A DNA stretch of 64,000 nucleotides from the NCBI RefSeq assembly GCF_033153115.1, contig NW_026889771.1, forward strand, positions 9,610,001 to 9,674,000, given 5' to 3'. The notes beneath the pieces were generated by a model. It saw nothing but the letters and a program-made list of their open reading frames with translations, was not told the DNA's origin and made no database searches. Shown here in pieces: positions 23,288 through 57,600 of this stretch. The translations under genes were made by a program, and so were the position numbers. Position 1 is the stretch's first letter. The number at the start of each line of letters is the position of its first letter. Source of the DNA: Saccostrea echinata. Taxonomy: Eukaryota.

Positions 23288-24988
23288 CTAAAGAAAAAAA
23301 ACGGTTACTTTTCAAAATGCAAAACAATTTAACATCAGGGCATTGTTTTGTATCTAAATGAGAGGAAGCACTTCATACATGTAATACCAGATAAAACATA
23401 AATGTGAAGAATTTAATCTATTTAAAGTGTCATTTACAGATTTTATTTTGAAATTAAAAGAAGTTTAATTTACGAATAAAGTCGTATACTTATTTTCATT
23501 TCAAATGAAAAATCACAGAAGTTTAAAACATATACAAATGTACTTGGTAATAGACTTAGGTCATGTGAATCAATCTACATGTAGTAAGAAGTATCAGTTA
23601 AGCATGGCATGAACTGGTATCCTGTGTCTTAGTATGACATTTCAAAGGCCTCAAGCCTGTACATTCAATACATTATTGCCAATATTGTATTTGCTATACA
23701 AACAAACAAGCACACAAAACCCGATCCGGATGGGGATTAGATATACTTTCCCGGTAGAATGGGGGGGGGGGGGGGTAAAATCATTATATGAAAGTTATTG
23801 GCAGGAAATAGAGAGTGGGTGACACTCTATGATATCTAGAGAAAAATCATACTGCTAAGGTCAGAAGTTTTTTTTTATTATATTATTATAAACCAAAATT
23901 AAAAAGATCCGTCTATTTGTATTATTAATTTATATAAATGAAATATGTGGAGATAACGAACAGTATTCGAGCTCAGAAGTCCGTTAAACATTACAAAATA
24001 GACGCAGAGCAAACACGGACCTCTAAGACGGCAGAGGTGGGATCAGGTGCCATGGAGGAGTTAGCATCCCCTACCGATAGGACTTTTCTGTAAATTACAC
24101 AATTTAAATCAATCGCGTTTCAAAGATATCAATTTTTTTTTAAATAACCGATTTATTTACCGACTCCACAAAAATAACAAAGATTTCAATAACTCCGCCT
24201 TAATCTGATTGCGTGACACTATAGCTAATCGAGACAATCAACAATAATGGCTAACAATGAGAACGAGGAGTAGACCAGCGTACACAAGCAGTTAACAGAT
24301 TCAGAGAGAAAAGGGAGGAAGAGATAGCAGACATTAACAATATCATGTACATTTATACCTCTTCTTCCATCATGGTTTTCCCACAGTCATTCGCGTGTCG
24401 GATCTTATTAATATTCAACACCATTACAACGAAGTTTAAAGTCAATTTAACTATAGAAACGTGAAGTTATTCGAGTTCAAAATCAGTGAAAATTTTAATT
24501 TTTAATCAGGAGATTTCCAAGATGATTTTGCTGTTGTTCATCCAATAAGTCAAGCTGACAAATTTCCACTCGAAACCCTAAGGATGTGGGAGCCGTACAG
24601 AGTTGCCATGGTTACTGACAAAAAATATACGATCCTTAAATTTCTAACCCCTATACATGTACATACCCCGCTCTTCATACTTTTTGATTTTAATGATAAT
24701 TCCGATAACTATGTAAAAACATTCCTATCAATTTTAACGACTTTTAACGAAATTGATATATGGTATATGTATAACAAGCAAAATATATTTTAGAGTTACC
24801 GTTCTTGTCTTGTGTAAAATAAATACTAGATGAGACGTATGCACAACGTAAACCATAGATAAATGTAAATTTTATTTATTTTTCTTAAATTAGAAGATAT
24901 AATACATGGTGTAAATCGTTGAAAGACTAAAATCCTGTTATATGCCTCAGTGCTCTAGCAATTCTACGTGAAAACACTTGTTTCTTTC

Positions 24989-25093
24989 TGTGGGCAATAT
25001 AGTCAAATGGATAGTTCGTGTACAAGAACATGTGATTTAACTTCTCAGCTAGCACATCCATGCTGTCTCCACTGACGCAACCCTGGAAAAATT
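24989..25093 (+). ncRNA. Degenerate vault-RNA-like copy (probably a pseudogene)
   Basis: TAGTCAAATGGATAGTTCGT...TGCTGTCTCCACTGACGCAACCCTGG. Paralogous to 46606-46713, including flanks, but the terminal stem and T-run are broken. Confidence 0.4.
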
Positions 25094-25435
25094 CCACCCG
25101 CAAAAGGTGTGTTTTCTGAAAAACAAACTTTCGGACATTTTCTGACATTCTTTAGGGAATTCAGGAGAAAATGAAATACTGTGAGAGAAAGATAACTTTT
25201 AAACAAATGTGAATTTTTAAATTGTACTTTTCTTTGATTTGCAGATTTTTTCGATTATCTTATGGATCTTTAATGTTAATAGACAAAATTTACGACTTTT
25301 ATTATATATGTCGAAAAACCTATTGAACTCAAAACACACGATGTTGTCTTTCACAAAAATTTGGTATTGTTGATTAAAAAGATTTTAATTTCCATTTGAT
25401 TTGTTATACATCTATTTACATATAAAAAAAAACCC

Positions 25436-34075: not shown

Positions 34076-35311
34076 CTATGTTTTATACGTAACATAGAAA
34101 ATAAAAACGATGACGGGAAACATGGTGGAACAAAGGAAAATTAATAAAAACAGTTTGTCCAAGGCATACGCAACCTCTTTCCACGTGACTTTTTCATCTA
34201 CAACCTCTTCACACGATTTGCAACAATCTTCAGCGGGTTTTATTCTGATGGTGATGGCAGAGGATGACATTTTTCCATGTGATTTTTGTCCCATGAATCT
34301 CACAAAAGCAACAATGCAAGATGACAAGACGTCATATGACCTATGGTATATATTTATTACGAGGACATTACAAATTAAGATCATGGTGCTGTTTGCAAGT
34401 TGAAATGCAAATATGATACTGAGGATGGAAAGGGGGTTTGACTGTTGCGGGACCTTCTCAGTTAGGATAGTAATAAATACGGCAAATGACAAGAAACTGG
34501 TGATCGAGAACGATATTCTCTCCCCTGATTTTACCGGAAGTAGAAAGACGAGCATATTTATTGATAAAAGGAAAAGAACCGGTAAAAATAGGTTGACAAT
34601 TAGGAAGGAGGATTTTCTTTTCATCTCCAGCTTGATTTCCATCGTTTTGTCAGTCACGATGGTGTCTAGAATGGATATGCTCCATTGTCCATTCTCTGTA
34701 AATGTATGCATTGCCTCTGCTGGTTTCGCGAGTTGCAGTTGAACTTCATAACTCTCATAGTTGAGAACAGCCAAGGTCAATGAACAGTGATGTATATCAA
34801 AGGGATAATACGTCACATCCGGTTCACACATGATTTTGATCATCCCTGAATTCTGTAAATCCATTAATCCGTGATTTGAAGCGGGTACAGTAAATCCTGC
34901 TATCTCAATCTCCATGAACTCCTCACTTTCTGCCGGATTTCGAACACCGATGTTGGGGACCCAGATATCGTCAATTGGAAGTCTAGTGACTGTTGCATTA
35001 CCATATTCATTCGGATTCCAACGGATAGACTCGTCTACCCAGGATAGATTAAGTCCACCATTGAAAGCAAAAAGACCGCTAACTTCATTGTAATTTTGTA
35101 TTGTGTGAAATTTGAAAGAAATATTGACAGTCAGTGGCAAGTCTTGGTCTGATATTGGCCTTAAGGTCTTTTTATATCCATCTAACATTTTGTTTTGAAG
35201 TGTTTTTTGGTGTTGGAGAGTCGAAAACTTTGGAGTAACAGCACCAAGCACAATGCATTGTGATGAATAAACAATTCCCAAAACCATAAACCAGATTTCG
35301 ATCCAGCGCAT
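34076..35311 (-). CDS. Intronless Cys-loop ligand-gated ion channel, nAChR-like non-alpha subunit (411 aa)
   Basis: Signal peptide, LRP motif, WVDESIRWNPNEY, IWVPNI, Cys-loop CEPDVTYYPFDIHHC, four TM segments with cation-type SGERISFSIT before M2, and VTWKEVAYALDKLF before M4. Confidence 0.93.
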   Translation of the reverse strand: MRWIEIWFMVLGIVYSSQCIVLGAVTPKFSTLQHQKTLQNKMLDGYKKTLRPISDQDLPLTVNISFKFHTIQNYNEVSGLFAFNGGLNLSWVDESIRWNPNEYGNATVTRLPIDDIWVPNIGVRNPAESEEFMEIEIAGFTVPASNHGLMDLQNSGMIKIMCEPDVTYYPFDIHHCSLTLAVLNYESYEVQLQLAKPAEAMHTFTENGQWSISILDTIVTDKTMEIKLEMKRKSSFLIVNLFLPVLFLLSINMLVFLLPVKSGERISFSITSFLSFAVFITILTEKVPQQSNPLSILSIIFAFQLANSTMILICNVLVINIYHRSYDVLSSCIVAFVRFMGQKSHGKMSSSAITIRIKPAEDCCKSCEEVVDEKVTWKEVAYALDKLFLLIFLCSTMFPVIVFIFYVTYKT

Positions 35312-35998: not shown

Positions 35999-37244
35999 CT
36001 TCTTCTTCCAGTAAGGAGTTAACCTCTTATTCAGAGTGATAATAACTCTGGCTTGGTTAAAACAGGAGGCTTCTTCTTTTAAAAACAGTTCTGGTTCTTC
36101 TGTCCCCAGGTGTGTAATATTTGTCTCGATTAATGTCCACAAGGTGGTTCCTGATTTTGTAGCACAGAATAAGTCGATGTAATGTTCTCCTATGTTGGAG
36201 TGAGTTCCACTCTAGTTGATCCAGTAATGATGTTATAGACCCAGGGGAGGTGTCCGAGTACTGGTTGAAGACGAACCTGGCTGCTCTACGCTGTACCTGC
36301 TCCAAATCCTTTGTTAAGTTGGCCTGATAAGGATTCCACACTGATGACGCATATTCGATGGATGGTCTGATCAAAGTACAGTACGCTGTTGCCTTAACTG
36401 TTGATGTACAATGACCCATGTTTCGTTTCAGGAAGCCCAAGGCTCTTGTAGCTTTCCCTATATTGGTGTAGATGTGTTTGGTCCATTGTAGGTCTTGGGA
36501 GATGGTAACACCAAGATACTTCCCACTCTCCATCACTTCCAGCTGATGTCCATGCAAGGTGTATGATGTTTGCAGAGGCTGCCGTTTGTTGGAGATCCTA
36601 ATAACTGTGCACTTTTCGGGGTGGAAGCACATCTGTCACTTCTTTTCCCATCCCTCTAAGGCAGTGAGATCTTCTGTAACTTGACTGCATCTCTCTGATT
36701 TCGGATCTGACGATAGATGAGGCAATCATCTGCAAACACTCTGGCGTCTGAATTGGTGCACTCAGGTAAGTCGTTAATGTAGGTCAGGAATAGGAGCGGT
36801 CCCAGGACAGTTCCTTGTGGTACTCCCGAAAGGACATCCAGAGGTGAAGATGTATGACCATCCAGAACCACTGATTGGGTTCTACAACTTAGGAAGTCCT
36901 TAATCCAGCCTAGGGTGGTACCTGACACTCCGTAGTGCTCCAACTTCAGTAGTAGATGTTGGTGAGGGACTTTATCAAAAGCTTTTGAAAAGTCCACTAG
37001 TATAATGTCTGTCTGTTGCCCCTGGTCCATATTCCTGGCTATCTGGTCCAGTGTTATGACAAGCTGTGTCTCACATGATCGGCGGGCTCGGAAGCAATGT
37101 TGCTCATCACAGAGGATGTTGTTTCGATCAAAGTGGTCCATAACTGTGCTGTGTACAACATGTTCCAGGAGCTTGCAGGCTATTGATGTAAGGGAGACAG
37201 GCCTGTAGTTTGATGGTTGATGTTTCTCCCCTTTCTTGTATATA
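35999..37244 (-). mobile_element. 5'-truncated non-LTR retrotransposon (LINE, CR1/L2-like clade), frameshifted RT
   Basis: Motifs PIYKKG...NYRPVSLTS, DFSKAFDKVPH, GVPQGTVLGPLLF, FADD and KYLGVTI. (GAA)n 3' tail, flanked by GGTT (35995-98, 37245-48). The empty site is visible at ~21335. Confidence 0.9.
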
Positions 37245-45457: not shown

Positions 45458-46605
45458 CAGTCTCATCATAAAATTTTGGTTTTCTTATACTTAGAATTCT
45501 TGATATCCCAAACATAAATGTCTATAATACTAAGAGTAAATTTATACCTTCATTAAAACAATCCCAGATAAAAAAAAATACTCTATGGATTGGCAGTACT
45601 CAAATGAATCACTAAACGAGTGTAATCTTCTCACTTATTTATTTTTGAGGAACAATTTTTGACTGGAAAAATATCTAATTTTATTAAAACCTGAATACAG
45701 AAAGCCAATTTGTAGATTACGTGTATCAGCACACAGACTCTTCATAGAATTAGGCAGATATAATAACACACCTAGAACAGAAAGAATATGTAAAAAATTG
45801 TATGCTATAATCAAACTGAAGATGAAGAACATTTCCTTATTCACTGTAGAAAATTTACAAAGGAAAGAGAAGACCTATGTAACTTAATCTCACCTAAAGT
45901 AAAACATTTTACAAAATTGCCTGATAAACAAAAATTATTCTGGATTCTAAATTGTGAGGAATTAGATATCTATTAAATTCTCTTGATTCAACTCTTTCTC
46001 TCTTGTATGTATGTATATCGTATTACATTATGTACTTTAAGATGAAAATATACAGGTGTTTACAATGTTCTTTCTTTTTGTCCCATGAGGGCCCTTAATT
46101 GGTAAATAAACGATTGAACTGAATATATAACAAGCTAGTCTCAACATTATTTTTGTTTCATTATGACAATTATTCATAGTTTCGTGACATTTTTTTTAAT
46201 TTTCATTTTATATTTTATGAGGGAAAATAAGATTTGATAAAATATTTGCAGTTGACTTTCTTAAGATCATGATTAAATTTTTTTTAAGAAAAAGTTTATA
46301 TCTCAATTTGAATTAACTGAAATCTTGATTAATATGATAATTCTCATTTCTTTAAGAAGCAAATAAAAATTTTTCTCGGGTGTAAAAAGGTAAAATATAC
46401 ACAATTCGCACAACGTAACAACGCACAACGTAAGTAACAGACAGGTGTTAATTTTATTCATTTCTCACAAATATAAGACGAATTACATGACATGTGAATC
46501 GTTCAAAGACAAATACTGAAAATTAAGACGGGAAAAAGGTCTATGTCACAATGTATCAGCCATAAAACATGTACATGTATATATGGGGTTTTTTACGTAT
46601 CGTCT

Positions 46606-46713
46606 ATGCAGGCAATATTTAGTCAAGTGGATACTTCGTTTAGAAAAACATGTGATTTACCTCCACAAATGGCACACCCGTGCTGTCTCCACTGACGCAA
46701 TCCTGCAAATTTT
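46606..46713 (+). ncRNA. Vault-RNA-like Pol III gene candidate
   Basis: TGCAGG...TAGTCAAGTGG ATACTTCGT...GTCTCCACTGACGCAATCCTGCAAATTTT: panhandle, box A and T4. Confidence 0.5.
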
Positions 46714-46837
46714 ACACCCGCGTGGAGGTATATTTTGGGAAGAACAAGAAATTTAGACGTTTTCTTTCTTCGAGGAAGGAATTTTTAAGAAATCAATTCC
46801 TGACTAAGAAAGATAACTCTTAAGTTAAGAATATACA

Positions 46838-46873
<36 letters not shown>

Positions 46874-47033
46874 TTTTTTTTTTAAATGCGTAGTAATACT
46901 TTTCATTACGATTAGGAGTGTTTTTGTTTTTTTAATGATGATTTTTTTTTTAAATCAAAAATTTGAATTTCATTTCTTTTCTGAATTAAGACTTCCCTCA
47001 CAGATATAATGTTATTTTGCACAAGGTTAAATC

Positions 47034-47137
47034 GTGCAGGCGTAGTCGTGTGGATACTTCGTTTAAATGAAACATTTGACTTACCTTCAAAACCGACGGG
47101 AGACCGTTTGTTTCCACTGACGCTTCCCTGCACTTTT
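47034..47137 (+). ncRNA. Vault-RNA-like Pol III gene candidate
   Basis: GTGCAGG/CCTGCAC terminal stem, box A TAGTCGTGTGG followed by ATACTTCG, GACGG-GAGA-CCGTT GNRA hairpin, TTTT terminator, and TATAAT about 30 nt upstream. Confidence 0.6.
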
Positions 47138-48991
47138 GCACCCGCTCAGATGCCAACATTTTCTACAATCCATCGTATCATTAAAAAAATAAAGCATTTT
47201 GCAGAATTATTTGAAAATGTGTCGTGGAATGTAAACAAATCAAGAAAGATAACTTCTTGTAAATCTCTCCGACGATCAAGACTGTCACTTCATGTGTCTT
47301 CTTTCCAATTTTTATTCTATAATTGCCCATTTGAAATATTTTTCAGACTTTGTGTTGTATACGATTTGTGTACGAATTATGATTGGAATTTTCGATAAGT
47401 ATTGTATATTTTTTCGTTAGTCATTTGCATTGTTTATTTTCTCTATGTATTCTATATTAATTAACTGACAATTATCCACTTGTATTATATATTTGTTATT
47501 CATATTGTATAACTTCCACTTTTTTATGAATAATCAGCGTGCCATTCTGTATCTATTACAACCCCCGCCCCCTCCTTTCTTTTCTTGCCCCCCCTTTTTC
47601 TTATTGCCATGCATTTTTGTATTGTTTATTTGTTTTTGTACATCACGTGTATATGTATTATATGTCATTTTGTTTGTGTTGGAGAGGACAATCTAAGTTG
47701 GTAAAACTTGTATCCAATCCTATTGATTATTTTCAATAAAATATATTTAAATAAAAAAAATAAAACTTCCAGCTGTAGTGTATGAAAAACCATTTGTATT
47801 CTTAAGTTTCAAATTGTATTGTTTGAGAATTCCATGGAATATGCTTTTAATATCCTATATATGTAATTCTAATTTATATAATTATTTGCACATTTGAGAA
47901 GAAAAGCAGATTTACAAAACCACAAAACATGCAAGTCCGTGTGCAATTTCTCAAACCATCGAAACCTGGGGGGGGGGGGATAAAAACACTTGTTAATCTG
48001 TTTAAATTAATCATGGTATAATGCTGTAGATGTAGTATTTGAACCATTAGATGCTGGTTGCCCCCCTTCCCCCCTTTCTGATTTTGTAAGCGGGTCGAGC
48101 ACTGGCAAATTCGAGGATTTGGACAGGTTTGTTTGTTTGTTTGTTTGTTTGTTTTTGTTTTGTTTTTGTTTTTTTGGCTTGTCAGAAAATTTTGGGAAGT
48201 TCCCCCCCCCCCTTTGTGTGATCAGTTTTTTTTTTGTTTTGTTTTTTGGCTTGTTAATTTTTTGGGGGGTGGGTGGGGGGGTAGTTGCCCCCCCCACTTT
48301 TGAAACCGTTGCTACGGGCCCGTTATCAATAACATGACCATCAAAAATGTCGTCATTTATACCTTCTTCTTAAAGCAACAAGAGTTGAAGGACGATTTTT
48401 TTTTAAGACTGAATGGCTCAAAATTCAAGTGCCGTGTTTCACTTCGTAGACGAAACGGGTACTCATAATTGTACGTACATGTATGTACTACTAGTATTTA
48501 TTCAGATTTTATACATTGTCTATTTCATTTGACATAGAAGTTGAAATTGAAATACTTTTTCAAACATCTTGAACAACTACTTTTGTTTCCAACTGAAGTT
48601 TTCTGATTTGTATTTACCTAAGTCCATGGGTTACAGTGCTTATTATTTTGTACTGATTTTTGTTCTGATATTTAAAATTTTGCTTTGCATAAGATATAAA
48701 TGGGCATTACTGTGTATATTGGTATAAATTATTATAAATAAATATTGTACACAAATGTATGGTATGATATATTTCATTTTGCTTTGATTTTTGTGTCAGT
48801 GCTAATTATGAATTTTTCAATAATTACTGCTCCGTGAAAATCAATCGTCGTATAAGGTCACCATTTTCATGTGAATATTCCCATGCGATCTTGCGACTTG
48901 TGATTTAATCAATGAAACATACTATGGATCTTTCCTTTCAGTGGTCCAACCTTGCTCCTTTTAAATTCTTGATTTTAAATACCCAGTGATT

Positions 48992-49094
48992 ATGCAGGCG
49001 TAGTCGTGTGGATACTTCGTGTATAAAAATAATAAAACTTGGAAAAAAAACTGCGGGTAACCGCTCGTTTCCACTGACGCAAACCTGCATTTTT
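48992..49094 (+). ncRNA. Vault-RNA-like Pol III gene candidate
   Basis: ATGCAGG/CCTGCAT terminal stem, box A TAGTCGTGTGG followed by ATACTTCG, GCGG-GTAA-CCGC GNRA hairpin, and T5 terminator. Confidence 0.6.
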
Positions 49095-49404
49095 GCATCG
49101 GCATTGATATTGCAAAATGATTTAATTGTTTAATCAATGGATATCTATATATGTGTGTATAATATAGAAAAGAAAAGATCTCATTTTGTCAGACTTAAAT
49201 TTCTCTCCGTTATCTTAACAGCCAATTGTTTTATCCCCGTGTGTGTGTGCGTGTGTGTGGGAAGGGGGGGGGGTGTTATATACAAATTGATAAACCGCAT
49301 GTTTACACTACGTCTTTTGCTTGGATTTGTCCTTACAATCTGGACTGTTTTGTTCTTTTAATACTCTGGGGAAAAACTTTGGGATCTATTTTTTATCAAA
49401 TATT

Positions 49405-51658: not shown

Positions 51659-54600
51659 ATGATTGAAGCGGTGGCTCTGTATTTTGTGTCGGAAGACTGC
51701 GGTCCATGGGCAAACTTTCTAAAGACGAAATTGGGAGAAAAAGCATACGACATTCGTGTTCAAGACATAGAGGCCTCTAGTGTGTCAGAAAGTCGAGAAA
51801 ACTACAAAGCTAACATAATCTTGGTGAGCCCAGCTTTTCTGGAACTGCCAACTTATGAACACTATTGCTCGTTTCCCATCAAACAATCATTGGTTGTGTT
51901 GCTTGGAGTAGAATACCAAGAATTTGAAGAATTAGCAACATCAAAAGGAGCTGAAAACATCTTAGGATTTCCTTTATTTGAAACCGAGGCAAACGAGAGT
52001 TCGGTGAGATGTCTTTTGGTGGAAATTATAGATCTCTATGAAAGAAATGTTGCTCTTGAGGAACTTGTACAGCCCCATCCAATCCCTGGTCATTTGTCAA
52101 AGACAAGGGAGAGTGACAATAGTTTTGACAGTGAATACGATCCATATGATTTCCCTCCAGCCCCCAGACCTCTTCCTGAATATATTGAATCACCTACATC
52201 GAACGAGCTGCAGAAGTTCATCTATAGCGAAAAGGTAAATCATATACGTGTAATTACATAGAGTTAGTAGGTTATGTCTTAGTTAATGCGAAGAAACCGA
52301 TCTACACTGAAAATAAGATGACTTAAGCTTTATTTTAATGATCTAATTTCGTTGTTGGGTTGTGGTGGACCCAACATTTACTTCAATCGTTAAGCCAACA
52401 TGTTCGTCGAAAGTTGGAAGGATTGCAATTGAAGTGTTAGAAGCAAATTGTGGTGTACAACGTTTGCCCAGCTTCTTTAGGCTGATACATATATGCATGA
52501 TATTGATGACAAGACAAGCTTATGTGCTTTTTCTAAATGCACAATGACAGACACCTTTTACAAAGAGTTACTTTTATATGACAGAGTCAACACTTGTAAT
52601 AACCTCTTGCACAATATAAATGAGTGAAATTTTTATACTAATTAGTAAGTGTATTTAATTATATTATTATCCGTTGCTTGTGAATCGATTAAAGTTAATT
52701 CGTTTTCTTTTTTTACCTGAAGGACAGCAAAATCTATCTCCTTATGGAAAGAAAAGACGAGGAAAATATTTTGATACAAGACGAAAATAGACCAGATACC
52801 TGTGTTCAATGCAAATACCTTGGCAAAGCTTTGTATGAAGCTTCCTTAACAGGTACAGCCAATTGACATTTTACTTGATCAACATCTAAGGTATTTGTGC
52901 AACAGAAAACAAACATGCCCAGGTAAACAGCATAATTATCTAATTAAAACAAGAGCAGCATTTCAACAAACGAGGAAGAGAAGAAAAAAGATGAAAATGT
53001 ATTGGAGGAATGTGAAAAGTTATCTTTAAACTAGAATTAACCTGTATTTGACACTGGCAAATACTTTCTGTATTGGGTTTCTCTTGCACTAAGTTTAAGC
53101 TGGTACTGAAATCTAATAATGGATGTCACATTATAACCTTTCATGCCCAGCTGAAAATGACCGAATCGGGTTGAAGGGGTTTATTCATGATGAACAATAC
53201 AAACCTTTATTTTTTCTTATCGTCTTTTCTTCCCCTCAAATACTTCCGCATTGAGTCAGCCCCCGTGGAAGTTACTAAAAATTCACGAGGTCACACCGAT
53301 AGATGTCAAAACAATGGTATTATGTACGTAAGAAATGAACAAGTTTAAAAGAACATTGTGTGCAATTTTGATAAAGGAGACTGAAACCCTTTATATTTAT
53401 TCGCCTTTTTCTACTTTTGACTTCGATAATTCAATGATGTCAACATTTTACGCTTACTCTTCTCTGTGGAAAACTTTGCGCTCTACTGACTGAAAGATGA
53501 TATTCGACATTGAATAAAGTGTTGTTTATTTTAGAATCACACATTCAACAATGAACTATACCGCCAAGAATTAAAATAGGTTTAACTTACTATTAAATTC
53601 TGTATGATGCAAGTTGAAACTTGATATAATCCACAAAATATACAGGGTTTCTTTGAGAAATTTGAAAAAAATAATAAACTTCACTGCCCAAATTTCGTGA
53701 TCTAAACTGCTTTTAAAAAGATCATCTGAAAATTTTCAAGTATTAATGATGATTTTCTTTTTTTCTTCCAAATGTAGATGATTTCGATAGAACACATGGG
53801 CTAAAAATAGTCACAACAAAGAGGAGAAATGTAGAGACAATTCGAATCGAACCATCATCTGAACCAGCACCACGTGATAAACTTTCTCAAATTCAGCAGT
53901 TGCTCAATGAAGAGTTAGAACCGCTAACAGTTCTATGCAAAGCTCTAAGACTGCCGGAAGTGTCACATTCTTGTCTCGACACGTTTCTGGCGGAAAAGTG
54001 TTCAAACTTCAAAATGTTTGACACACTTCAGAGTTTGTCTTTAGGAGAAAACCTCAATGAAAAACGTAAGAATATTCATTTTTATGTCAAAAATTGAACG
54101 AAGTTAATTATTAATAAAAAAAAATTGTTGGGTTTTTTTCTCCCTTAACCTTCTTTGATGCTTTCCTTCGAATTGAATATTGACATTTTAGGTATTATGT
54201 TAATTGCAGATTTGGAAGGAAGTAATTGGCCCACGTTGCTGCATTTTGGTGCTGAATTTGGACTTAGTTTGTTTTGTGATGAACTTCTACGGGTTCCTGG
54301 AATGGACAAATTTTGTCACGTTACCAATGCTCAGGACGAGGCACCTGGTCAGTTGGCTCGAAATCGCGGCTTCCTACAATTAGCTGAAAAACTGGACATG
54401 CTTACCGTAACCCAAAGAGACAAGCGTTAGTGCCTGCTAAAAATAACTTGCTGTCATTTCAAAGCTTTTTTAAATGCTGAAATTAATCACTTACAAAATG
54501 ACAGTCATATATTGGAAGGATAGAGTGTGATCAATTTTTATTTCTTTGTTTTGTAGGAAACCCTCCAGCAAATAAGGATAGCGGTATAAGTGACATGCAT

Positions 54601-57600
54601 ACTTCCGCCTATAGTCAAGTATCTGACACAAGCTCGTGTGAGTGATCAATATATTCAATCAGTTATCAAATTTTTGTAAATGTGATTTTTGTTGAAAACA
54701 TTCCAATATTTTTGTTGAATTTTTAATTAGATGCTCCCTCACACAGAGCAGTCGATAGTTTATTGGAGGACGAAACATATCAAATGCCTCCTCCAACACC
54801 CCACCAACATCCACAACAATATTACATAAATTCTAACCCGATATCGCCATCGAAAACAGACAGTACCCAAACATCAGAAGAATCCCCACCCCCTCCTCCC
54901 CCAAAGATTAAAAGTTCGCCGTTGCCTTGTCGACCTCCACCTGCCACAGAAAGAATTTCTATGGACTCTAGGATCTCCATTGACTCGAGGTCTTCCATGG
55001 ATTCAAGAACTACCATAGATTCAGTAACCACCATAGATTCAAGCACCACCTTAGATTCATCGAGCATATCACGAAATTCCATTCAATCTTGCTCGTCTTC
55101 CGGAAGTGATGCTACAATAGCAGACTATGTCGACATGACTTCAACTTCGTCTTCTTACATGGACATGAAATCAGTGCAAAGAACCAACAGTAAAACACTG
55201 TCGAAACCTCCTGCAGTTCTCCCCAAGCCGAGTTCGTCTGATTCCAGTTCTGGGTACGCCGTTACATCCGATGAATCCTCAGATAGGGGATCAGAGTACA
55301 TGCCGATGAGTGAGTTACCTCCTCATATCAAGCCTTCTCACTCAGAATCTGCTATAAAAAAGCAGCTCTCTGCAGATGGTGATTATATGAGTCCCAGTGA
55401 AGCCAAAACAGGTGAGTTTTTCAGATTTCTGCTCAGTAAGACTTTGAATTTTAAAGGTACATGATATGTTTTTAGTATCATGTTAATAATCTAATTTTTC
55501 TATCATTTCAGGTCCCAAACGCCATCCAACTTCATTACCTTTAGCAGAATCCCATCAATTTCATTCAACATCTGATATAAAACGCGAGGTTACAGATCAT
55601 TGGTCTATTCCACCTGGTGAGTTTTCCTTTTTGATCAAAACTTTAATTTTTTCTTTTGAATTGTGGAGAAAATTAAATGGTGCTACATTGTAAGCATTAT
55701 ATAAGGAAATGTAATAAAATGCCATTTTTTTATTTTAGAAATTCCAGCGCATCAAAGCAAAAAGCCCGGGGATCCAGCTTTACCCCTTTCACATCAAAAC
55801 AGAAGCATGTCCGAGAGTGATACTTCTCGGCCTCGTTTTGCGGGACGCATAGGTATTTCTGTTCACGTGATTATTCTCTTCGTCCTTGACCTAATTTTTT
55901 TTAATATATCTATTTTAGCTATGAAATCTCCCAAAATGCTGAGATGAAATATTTTTAATTTTTTGTATGTGTTTTGCTATATCAAGGGTCTCCTTTATCA
56001 CCGAACATGCCGGAAACAGTGTTTGAGAAAGGTCACCAAGTGCTCCATCGACAAGGAAGGGACAGAAGCGCGAGTGCTTCCCGGAAGTGTAGTTCTGATG
56101 ACGATATGACAATGGTAATTTGCTTTATCGTGATATATATGCACAAGACTCCCTAATTGCTATTTTTTATTTTTACAAATTTATTTTAGCAAAATGTTGC
56201 TAGTTTTTGTGCTTTATTGTCTGAGAGATGAATTAATTATCAACTTAAATATTAAAGTTGAGATTTCTTTTGATCTTGAAGAACCAGCGTCATCAGTCTA
56301 AGGGATTTTTCAGTAAGCTGAAAAATAAAATGGGAGGAGGAAGAAAAATGTCATGTCCACCAGAAGCAATTAAAGAAAGTTTAGATCAATATGTAAGTTG
56401 CACTTCAGTGGATCAGACATTGAGAATCGAAATATAATTTGTAACCCTCACTGAGACGGACACAGAGGGTCTAGATCACTTTAGCTCTGTGGAACAAATA
56501 AAGAGATCTATAACAAAAAAATTAACATATTGCACGATGGAACAAACAGATGAGTAAAGAGTTAAAATAAATTGTTAAATTAGGGTTAAATAATGAGTTT
56601 CAAAATCAATTTACTTGTTGGGGATCGGTAAAACACACCAGTATACGAAGTTCATGGTAGTTTGATGAAAAAAAAGTTCAGAATCAGCTAGTTTATTTAA
56701 ATCTTGAACCATTGTTTTATCTGTATTTATAACTTCAAAAGAACGACAAAGTAATTTTTATATCTCTCGGGAAGTTTAAAAGCATTGAAGGAAGTGTACA
56801 GAAATAAAACTTTCATTATTAAATAATATCTACGGATATACCATCTGTCCATTCAAATATATAGTTTATCTTTTATAAGTACAAGAAAGTATCTAGAGCG
56901 ATTAATATTTTCATCTCCCTAAGCTATTTTTTTTATTTATGTGTAGATGATAAGTATGCTATAAGAAGATGTGTTCTTCCTTGTTTTAGCATAAGAGAAA
57001 TCAACAACAACTAAAGTCCAAACCCTCAGAGGAGAACAGGGACTCCAATATCAGTACTTCTAGCTCTTCCAGTAAGTAGCAATCTTACCAAGATAATTAC
57101 AGTTCACCAAAGCTGTTAAAATCTAGTGGAATCTGATTTTAAGTCCAGTATTTTGAAACCAAATTATGATTTAATTTTTGGAAATGCCGATCAAGATTTC
57201 TGTTGTGGCAGCATGATTTTAAGACAAGTAAAAATCATGCTTATAACATTTGAAACAAAATTAGTTAATTGACCAAACTTTTAATTTGAAGGTCATGAAG
57301 GTCATATTCCGGATGAAAATGCTACAGGAGAGGTATTTTATTAATTTTATCAATAGTGTAGCAAAATAAATTACATGTATATTGATTTTATTGGAACTGA
57401 ATATACATATAATTATAGATTGTACAAGTATTTTTCTGAGTCAGTCCACATTTTTATCTAAATGATATCAAGGAAATTCAAGTGTGGAAATTCTAAAACA
57501 AAAAAATCACTTTCCTTAGAAATCCCAGATCCTGTTAAGTAAAAAAAAATACGCACGTGACTAAAATTTGCTCTGTCTGCAGTATATGAATTATACTTAC

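Follow-up and report, generated by a model that had tools for sequence, protein, structure and literature searches.

Conserved elements and their match to the vault RNA family

The window analyzed here is a 64,000-nucleotide (nt) stretch of the genome of the mollusc Saccostrea echinata (RefSeq assembly GCF_033153115.1, contig NW_026889771.1, positions 9,610,001 to 9,674,000 of the forward strand), and our subject is a set of related elements of about 100 nt on its plus strand, which we describe as candidate vault RNA (vtRNA) genes. Vault RNAs are small RNA polymerase III (Pol III) transcripts that in other animals are carried in the giant vault particle. Copy 1 lies at 46606-46713 (108 nt, including a T4 terminator at 46710-46713), copy 2 at 47034-47137 (104 nt, T4 at 47134-47137), and copy 3 at 48992-49094 (103 nt, T5 at 49090-49094). 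A decayed fourth copy, probably a pseudogene, is located at 24988-25092, also on the plus strand. An earlier note on this DNA had claimed all four, and both a reading of the sequence and block searches of the window recovered each of them where it had been placed.

Copies 1-3 have in common a box A followed by GGATACTTCG, a variable center, CCACTGACGC, a closing stem, and a T4-5 terminator. The box A and GGATACTTCG block, which aligns with positions 9-28 of the Rfam Vault consensus (UUUAGCucAGcGGUUACuUCg), occupies 46620-46638 in copy 1, 47043-47061 in copy 2, and 49001-49019 in copy 3 (+). Near the 5′ end of these copies, the GGUUACUUCG block expected after box A in vault RNA reads TAGTC(AA/GT)GTGGATACTTCG. 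The 3′ strand of the second helix and of the closing helix, TCCACTGACGC-nnn-CCTG, is found at 46688-46705, 47113-47130, and 49070-49087 (+). In the 64-kb window the box A block TAGTCNNGTGGATACTTCG, allowing up to two mismatches, matches four times (25000, 46620, 47043, and 49001), as does the 3′ block TCCACTGACGCNNNCCTG with up to one mismatch (25068, 46688, 47113, and 49070); all matches are on the plus strand, the order of the two blocks is identical in all four copies, and dinucleotide-preserving shuffles give expectations of 0.00 and 0.01, respectively. No TTTT occurs within the body of any copy and copies 1-3 end in T4-T5, as had been reported for this strand. The likeness among copies covers the ~105-nt body plus ~8 nt beyond the T-run and extends no further.

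The elements were compared with the Rfam 15 Vault covariance model RF00006, which has a gathering score of 34 bits. Copies 2 and 3 exceed that score with 43.7 and 36.3 bits and are matched over the full length of the model (positions 1-99), and copy 1 (46606-46712) is matched end to end at 31.1 bits. These matches are confined to the plus strand. A scan of 46300-49400 returned no match on the copies to any other Rfam family, Y RNA included, at E values up to 10. Across the whole 923-Mb genome, all RF00006 matches above the cut-off are members of the family to which the window copies belong, and the best unrelated sequences reach no more than 23 bits. Judged on sequence, the elements are very likely Pol III genes of the vault RNA family, comprising three probably active paralogues and one pseudogene. 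The same identification had been put forward in the earlier note, and it gains support from the RF00006 scores together with the helix covariation, the low and clustered copy number, and the presence of genes for the major vault protein MVP described below.

Panhandle structure and sequence constraint

RNAalifold applied to a MAFFT alignment of 14 copies returned the vault panhandle, a 7-bp closing helix and a 3+6-bp helix pairing box A with UCCAC-UGAC. In this alignment 96.0% of helix cells pair, as compared to 37-46% in controls whose 3′ partners were slid 1-3 columns away, and the covariation score is 0.402 versus 0.04-0.10 in the slid controls, with both sides changed in six pairs. With 18 copies aligned to our own model (see below), 93.7% of cells pair and seven pairs carry double changes; slid-control pairing across both alignments ranged from 35 to 46%. 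One closing-stem pair is A-U in 8 of the 18 copies, C-G in 8, and U-A in 1, and one pair of helix 2 is U-A in 10 and G-C in 6. Compensatory changes fall in both helices and none survive in the slid controls. Within the window, the terminal stem co-varies as previously claimed: copy 2 has GTGCAGG/CCTGCAC, copy 3 ATGCAGG/CCTGCAT.

Single-sequence folds of copies 1-3 reproduce the panhandle helices of the alignment, with minimum free energies (MFE) of -28.6 kcal/mol (z -2.97), -33.1 kcal/mol (z -3.35), and -28.8 kcal/mol (z -2.78), respectively. At the position of box B, or of the T-arm of a transfer RNA (tRNA), the copies carry differing hairpins. The MFE fold of copy 2 contains the GNRA-capped hairpin GACGG-GAGA-CCGTT at 47095-47108 and copy 3 has GCGG-GTAA-CCGC at 49053-49064, both in agreement with the earlier description, and copy 1 has GGCAC-ACCC-GTGCT at ~46671-46684 (all +). 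In the fourth copy, at 24988-25092, the closing stem is broken, AAAAAT stands in place of the T-run, and both a panhandle fold (z -0.55) and a TATA-like element near -30 are missing. It is because the fold, the T-run, and an intact stem are missing that we call this copy a pseudogene.

The folds also bear on the strand that would be transcribed. G-U pairs are frequent, for example in 9 of 18 copies at the first pair of helix 2, and since these would turn into C-A on the minus strand, the plus strand is indicated as the RNA strand. The conserved blocks could instead be minus-strand features, either a promoter or first exons with a GAAG|GTAAGT splice donor, and copy 2 does read GAAGGTAAGT on its minus strand at 47079-47088. 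That donor-like site, however, is intact in copy 2 only, with GTAAAT in copy 1 and none in copy 3. Minus-strand folds are stable too (z -1.6 to -3.3), as is the case for any panhandle, but the loss of the G-U pairs and the restriction of the Rfam match to the plus strand speak against them. Likewise, the T-runs terminate a plus-strand product, whereas the minus strand of the copies would carry internal T-runs of 4 to 8 that would stop Pol III. Open reading frames (ORFs) over or near the cluster, among them those at 47009-47398 (+), 46912-47133 (-), 51659-52261 (+), and 54763-55464 (+), have no Pfam match, including those that overlap the copies. We consider a minus-strand origin of the conserved blocks very improbable.

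Identity among the three window copies is 0.82 in the 5′ module, 0.84 in the 3′ module, and 0.60 in the center. In the 100-nt flanks on both sides it is 0.51, as compared to ~0.50 in shuffled sequence. Because the modules are conserved while the flanks are random, constraint sits on the ends of the RNA. Judged by these data, constraint acts on the two helices and on the ACUUCG block but not on the center. In known vault RNAs, conservation is limited to the regions of boxes A and B (PMC7058938, PMC8824774).

Paralogues and candidate control elements

To define the family in this genome, we built a covariance model, R1, from the 14 copies and used it to score the best 150 candidates of a genome search, so that the member count is a lower bound. 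In the 923 Mb, R1 identified at least 18 members, grouped in three clusters apart from two singletons. The window copies score 83.9 (copy 1), 97.2 (copy 2, the best in the genome), and 87.9 bits (copy 3), and the decayed copy scores 65 bits. A second cluster, at 12.008-12.015 Mb of the window's own contig (C22) and 2.33 Mb downstream, holds five copies on both strands, confirmed with Rfam. The third cluster, at 30.963-31.072 Mb of contig C2, holds seven copies of 113-119 nt (L044:2511-2623, L044:7234-7346, L045:6311-6423, L045:7663-7781, L046:1472-1585, L054:7354-7466, and L043:8100-8217), which score 41-51 bits with RF00006 (up to 51.3). One singleton was found by R1 at C1:1.2525 Mb. The other, at C30:15484608-15484738 (+; L061:109-239), is 131 nt long with a Rfam Vault score of 40.2 bits and a fold z of -3.67, and combines a vertebrate-type closing stem, GCTGG/CCAGC, with GGTTACTTCG and a central ATACTTACCTG stretch; the exact GGTTACTTCG also occurs in paralogues of the 12.01-Mb cluster. 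Very weak R1 matches at L058:3696-3801 (+) and L046:6622-6720 (-), with 20 and 19 bits (E 0.04-0.08), lie within the two other clusters and may be strongly decayed copies.

The C2 copies have a tRNA-like cloverleaf core. The Rfam tRNA model scores 30-39 bits in four of the seven, and ARAGORN assigns three to tRNA-Asp or tRNA-Pro, with anticodons that disagree (GTC, TGG). Where the window copies have a short hairpin, the C2 copies have a canonical T-arm, GTGGG-TTCGAAT-CCCAC. Their cloverleaf-like core possibly hints at a tRNA ancestry. These tRNA calls, like the presence of a box A, would also suit the heads of a tRNA-derived short interspersed nuclear element (SINE) or of some other dispersed repeat. 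That reading is largely refuted by copy number and flanks, and we give it almost no weight: the at least 18 copies in 923 Mb form three clusters and two singletons, a strict 3′-end pattern yields no further members above the control count, and the elements share no flank, A-rich or repeat tail, or target-site duplication, their similarity stopping 8 nt past the T-run. These counts describe a small family of genes rather than a repeat scattered through the genome. The earlier note had proposed to build a new covariance model and to look for dispersed copies as a check; applied to the best 150 candidates in this species' own genome, that check returned at least 18 mostly clustered members and not hundreds of scattered copies.

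Upstream of the window copies, TATA-like elements are located on the plus strand at 46578-46584 for copy 1 (-28 to -22, read from the sequence), 47005-47010 for copy 2 (TATAAT, -29 to -24), and 48960-48967 for copy 3 (TTTAAATT, -32 to -25). The block is thus centered near -27 in copies 1-3, and it lies at the same distance in three of the five copies of the 12.01-Mb cluster. Given the AT-rich flanks, these blocks are suggestive only as candidate promoter elements. In five of the seven C2 copies, a cyclic AMP response element (CRE)-like TGACGTCAC is found at about -52 and a TATA-like TATATTATTAAA at about -26. No CRE-like element was found upstream of the window copies.

Several observations weigh against the window copies being active vault RNA genes. 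Copy 1 falls 3 bits below the 34-bit Rfam cut-off and has an A.A mismatch at the first pair of its closing stem. Box B (GGTTCGANNCC-like), an internal promoter block, matches the canonical GGTTCGAATCC at 5-7 of 11 positions by eye in the window copies, which carry a short hairpin there, in accord with its earlier description as degenerate. The compensatory changes mostly separate clusters and thus amount to about 6-8 events, not many. An association of these particular copies with vaults would be extrapolated from the family, and most mammalian vault RNA is itself outside vaults (PMC7058938).

Part of this evidence would suit silent or dying paralogues in the window, with the C2-type copies, the C30 singleton, or both as the working vtRNA genes. 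Box B is canonical (GGTTCGAATCC) in the C2 paralogues, whose Rfam scores are also higher (41-51 bits). Transcribed vertebrate vtRNA genes are marked by upstream CRE-like and TATA elements (PMC7058938), and the CRE-like element is present at five of the seven C2 copies and at none in the window, where one copy (24988-25092) is plainly decayed. That copy, however, exemplifies what lost constraint looks like, and copies 1-3 are unlike it. Their 5′ and 3′ modules are 82-84% identical while the flanks are random, copies 2 and 3 differ in their closing stem by a compensatory exchange of G-C and A-U, and none of the three has lost its T-run terminator or its TATA-like element at about -30. Moreover, expressed flatworm vtRNAs also have a weak box B (‘GTTC’ only) (PMC8824774). 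Silence of the window copies is therefore, in our judgment, unlikely, and we retain the reading of three probably active vault RNA genes.

A further conserved motif lies beyond the terminators. It reads ACACCCGC at 46714-46721 after copy 1, GCACCCGC at 47138-47145 after copy 2, and GCATCGGC at 49095-49102 after copy 3, and it is also present at 25094-25101 after the decayed copy (all +). Directly after the T-run, (A/G)CA(C/T)C(C/G)G(C/G), consensus RCACCCGC, is found in nine of nine copies of the window and 12.01-Mb clusters (L058, L057), and the flanks beyond it are random. CACCCGC has only 4+1 occurrences in the 64-kb window, three of them after the terminators of the window copies. The C2-type copies, whose internal box B is good, lack RCACCCGC after their terminators. 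By eye, 9 of 14 positions of the T-run plus motif agree with the vertebrate box B region in its 3′ part (GGTTCGAGACCCGC, Rfam consensus), and the match of the motif to box B is weak (TT..A..CC). The motif could possibly be a displaced promoter or factor site, judging from its position and letters. In yeast SNR6, a B block lies downstream of the gene. In primate VTRNA1-1, a second box B and terminator follow downstream of the gene (PMC7058938), a loose parallel that we offer as a hypothesis given the weak match between motif and box B.

The variable center holds a motif of its own, ACTTACCT at 47079-47086 in copy 2 and ATTTACCT at 46655-46662 in copy 1 (+). As A(C/U)UUACCU it is common to copies 1 and 2 and the C30 singleton, its aligned counterpart in the singleton being ATACTTACCTG. 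The MFE folds place it in a hairpin loop in copies 1 and 2, one pair of the stem changing from G-C to U-A. Its reverse complement is the GAAG|GTAAGT site flagged in the earlier note, and the letters of the motif are those of the 5′ end of U1 small nuclear RNA. This likeness among copies may be no more than shared descent.

The paralogues can be arranged as a graded series. The C2 type has the cloverleaf core, a canonical box B, and CRE and TATA elements; the C30 type has the CUGG/CCAG stem; and the window and 12.01-Mb (C22) types have a decayed box B with RCACCCGC directly after the terminator. A joint reading of these features would be that the series records the descent of vault RNA from a tRNA gene, that RCACCCGC and the T-run, as a displaced promoter or factor site downstream, replace box B, and that the U1-like loop pairs with 5′ splice sites. 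As a whole this proposal is speculative, and we regard it as improbable.

Working model and comparison with known systems

Read from the sequence, the transcript would be ~100 nt long, starting at the A/G before TGCAGG and ending in the T4-5 run. The RNA would fold as the family's panhandle, with the 7-bp closing helix joining its 5′ and 3′ ends and a second helix in which box A (GTCR-N-GTGGA) pairs with UCCAC-UGAC. Both helices would enclose a fast-evolving central domain with lineage-specific hairpins. By analogy with the family, Pol III transcription would proceed from box A and the upstream TATA-like element, the latter being invoked in view of the degenerate internal box B. Knowledge of the family further suggests a TROVE-domain protein of the TEP1 type as a candidate binder, and a partial association with vault particles.

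Few small RNAs of the housekeeping type are conserved as poorly as vault RNAs, which outside vertebrates have come to light mainly through computational prediction. The window copies resemble RF00006 vault RNAs in their length of ~100 nt, in a box A followed by GG(A/U)UACUUCG, in the combination of a closing helix and a box-A helix around a variable center, in the oligo-T end, and in their occurrence as small gene clusters. They differ in the degenerate box B, in the RCACCCGC directly after the terminator, and in the closing stem, which is CAGG/CCUG in the window copies as compared to CUGG/CCAG in vertebrate-type vault RNA; the C30 paralogue keeps CUGG/CCAG. The earlier note had held that vault RNAs are little or not described in protostomes. 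This is right only in part: the record already includes lophotrochozoan vault RNAs from Lottia, Helobdella, Macrostomum, and Fasciola. RF00006 contains entries from Lottia gigantea (a mollusc), Helobdella robusta, and Macrostomum lignano (PMC8824774), and a paper of 2009 (PMC2770079), with reference to Mosig, Zhu and Stadler 2009, mentions homologues in two lophotrochozoan lineages. The vault RNA call for the window copies is thus an addition to a family already predicted in limpet, leech, and flatworms.

The closest described parallel is the flatworm Fasciola hepatica, from which five expressed vtRNAs, four of them clustered, were reported in 2022 (PMC8824774). Fasciola vtRNA1-5 are ~110 nt long, with a panhandle fold and a very weak box B, as in the window copies (PMC8824774). 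Their layout is GTGGGTTACTTCGTG ... CCCCACCGGC-AAT-CCCGA-TC-ATTT, and the blocks GTGGGTTACTTCGTG toward the 5′ end and CCCCACCGGC-AAT-CCCGA toward the 3′ end recur in the window copies (PMC8824774 supplement). The Fasciola RNAs have small-RNA-seq support and are enriched in extracellular vesicles (PMC8824774), whereas the window copies are predicted from sequence. At the human VTRNA1 locus, internal type-2 elements are combined with upstream elements (PMC7058938). The C2 paralogues have CRE-like and TATA-like elements, whereas the window copies have TATA-like elements at about -30 and lack a CRE-like one.

Two other classes of Pol III product invite comparison. Like the predicted products of the window copies, Y RNAs are Pol III transcripts of ~100 nt with a closing helix of their ends and clustered genes, and they are bound by TROVE proteins. 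The window copies differ from them in the vault-specific box A-ACUUCG block and the second helix, and the Y RNA model, as stated, gave no Rfam match. tRNA genes share box A with the window copies and, with the C2 paralogues, also the T-arm/box B and the cloverleaf-like core. The window copies give no tRNA match, and in the C2 copies an 18-nt 5′ and a 20-nt 3′ extension form the vault panhandle, with a Vault score higher than the tRNA score. Since tRNA finders call them tRNAs, the C2-type copies are an annotation trap.

Routine Rfam-based annotation would find the window cluster, because two of its three copies pass the standard threshold, and knowledge of vaults is unchanged by the finding, the family having already been predicted in Lottia. 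Its use lies in the at least 18 paralogues in three structural subtypes, which can serve the family model, mollusc annotation, and the mapping of constrained RNA parts.

Candidate partner proteins and other features of the window

The genome encodes MVP at C30:22.871-22.878 Mb (MVP_shoulder 122 bits, Vault repeats 48-70 bits), and a second MVP locus is found at C3:3.424-3.434 Mb. The C30 vtRNA singleton and the first of these genes lie on the same contig, 7.4 Mb apart. The TROVE domain is the RNA-binding module of TEP1 and Ro60. Its Pfam model (PF05731) gives ~25 matches of 70-140 bits in ~500-aa open frames, mostly without stops and apparently intronless, several of them in local clusters (C40:1.27-1.45 Mb, C83:0.22-0.60, C72:0.10-0.19, C53:1.45-1.48, and others). 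A multi-exon TROVE gene is located at C1:44.147-44.152 Mb. The vertebrate TEP1_N Pfam model matched nowhere in the genome, and neither did its control, so this search is uninformative. The TROVE expansion is unusual, and the same genome has several vault-like and Y-like small RNA arrays.

Elsewhere in the window, a scan for bacterial-type promoters and terminators yielded numbers like those of shuffled sequence, in keeping with an animal genome. Between copies 2 and 3, the segment 47960-48300 is of low complexity, with poly-G/poly-C runs and (GTTT)n, and it gives rise to weak spurious Rfam matches to SIB_RNA, blv_FSE, and mir-360. Matches to SIB_RNA, SCARNA7, blv_FSE, and mir-360 in 48234-49285 were rejected as weak, lying far under their cut-offs in low-complexity DNA. 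On the minus strand at 34076-35311, an intronless 411-aa ORF encodes a Cys-loop ligand-gated ion channel (Neur_chan_LBD 124 bits, Neur_chan_memb 47 bits), and at 36656-37141, also on the minus strand, a 161-aa ORF with a reverse transcriptase domain (RVT_1, 73 bits) represents a retroelement fragment.

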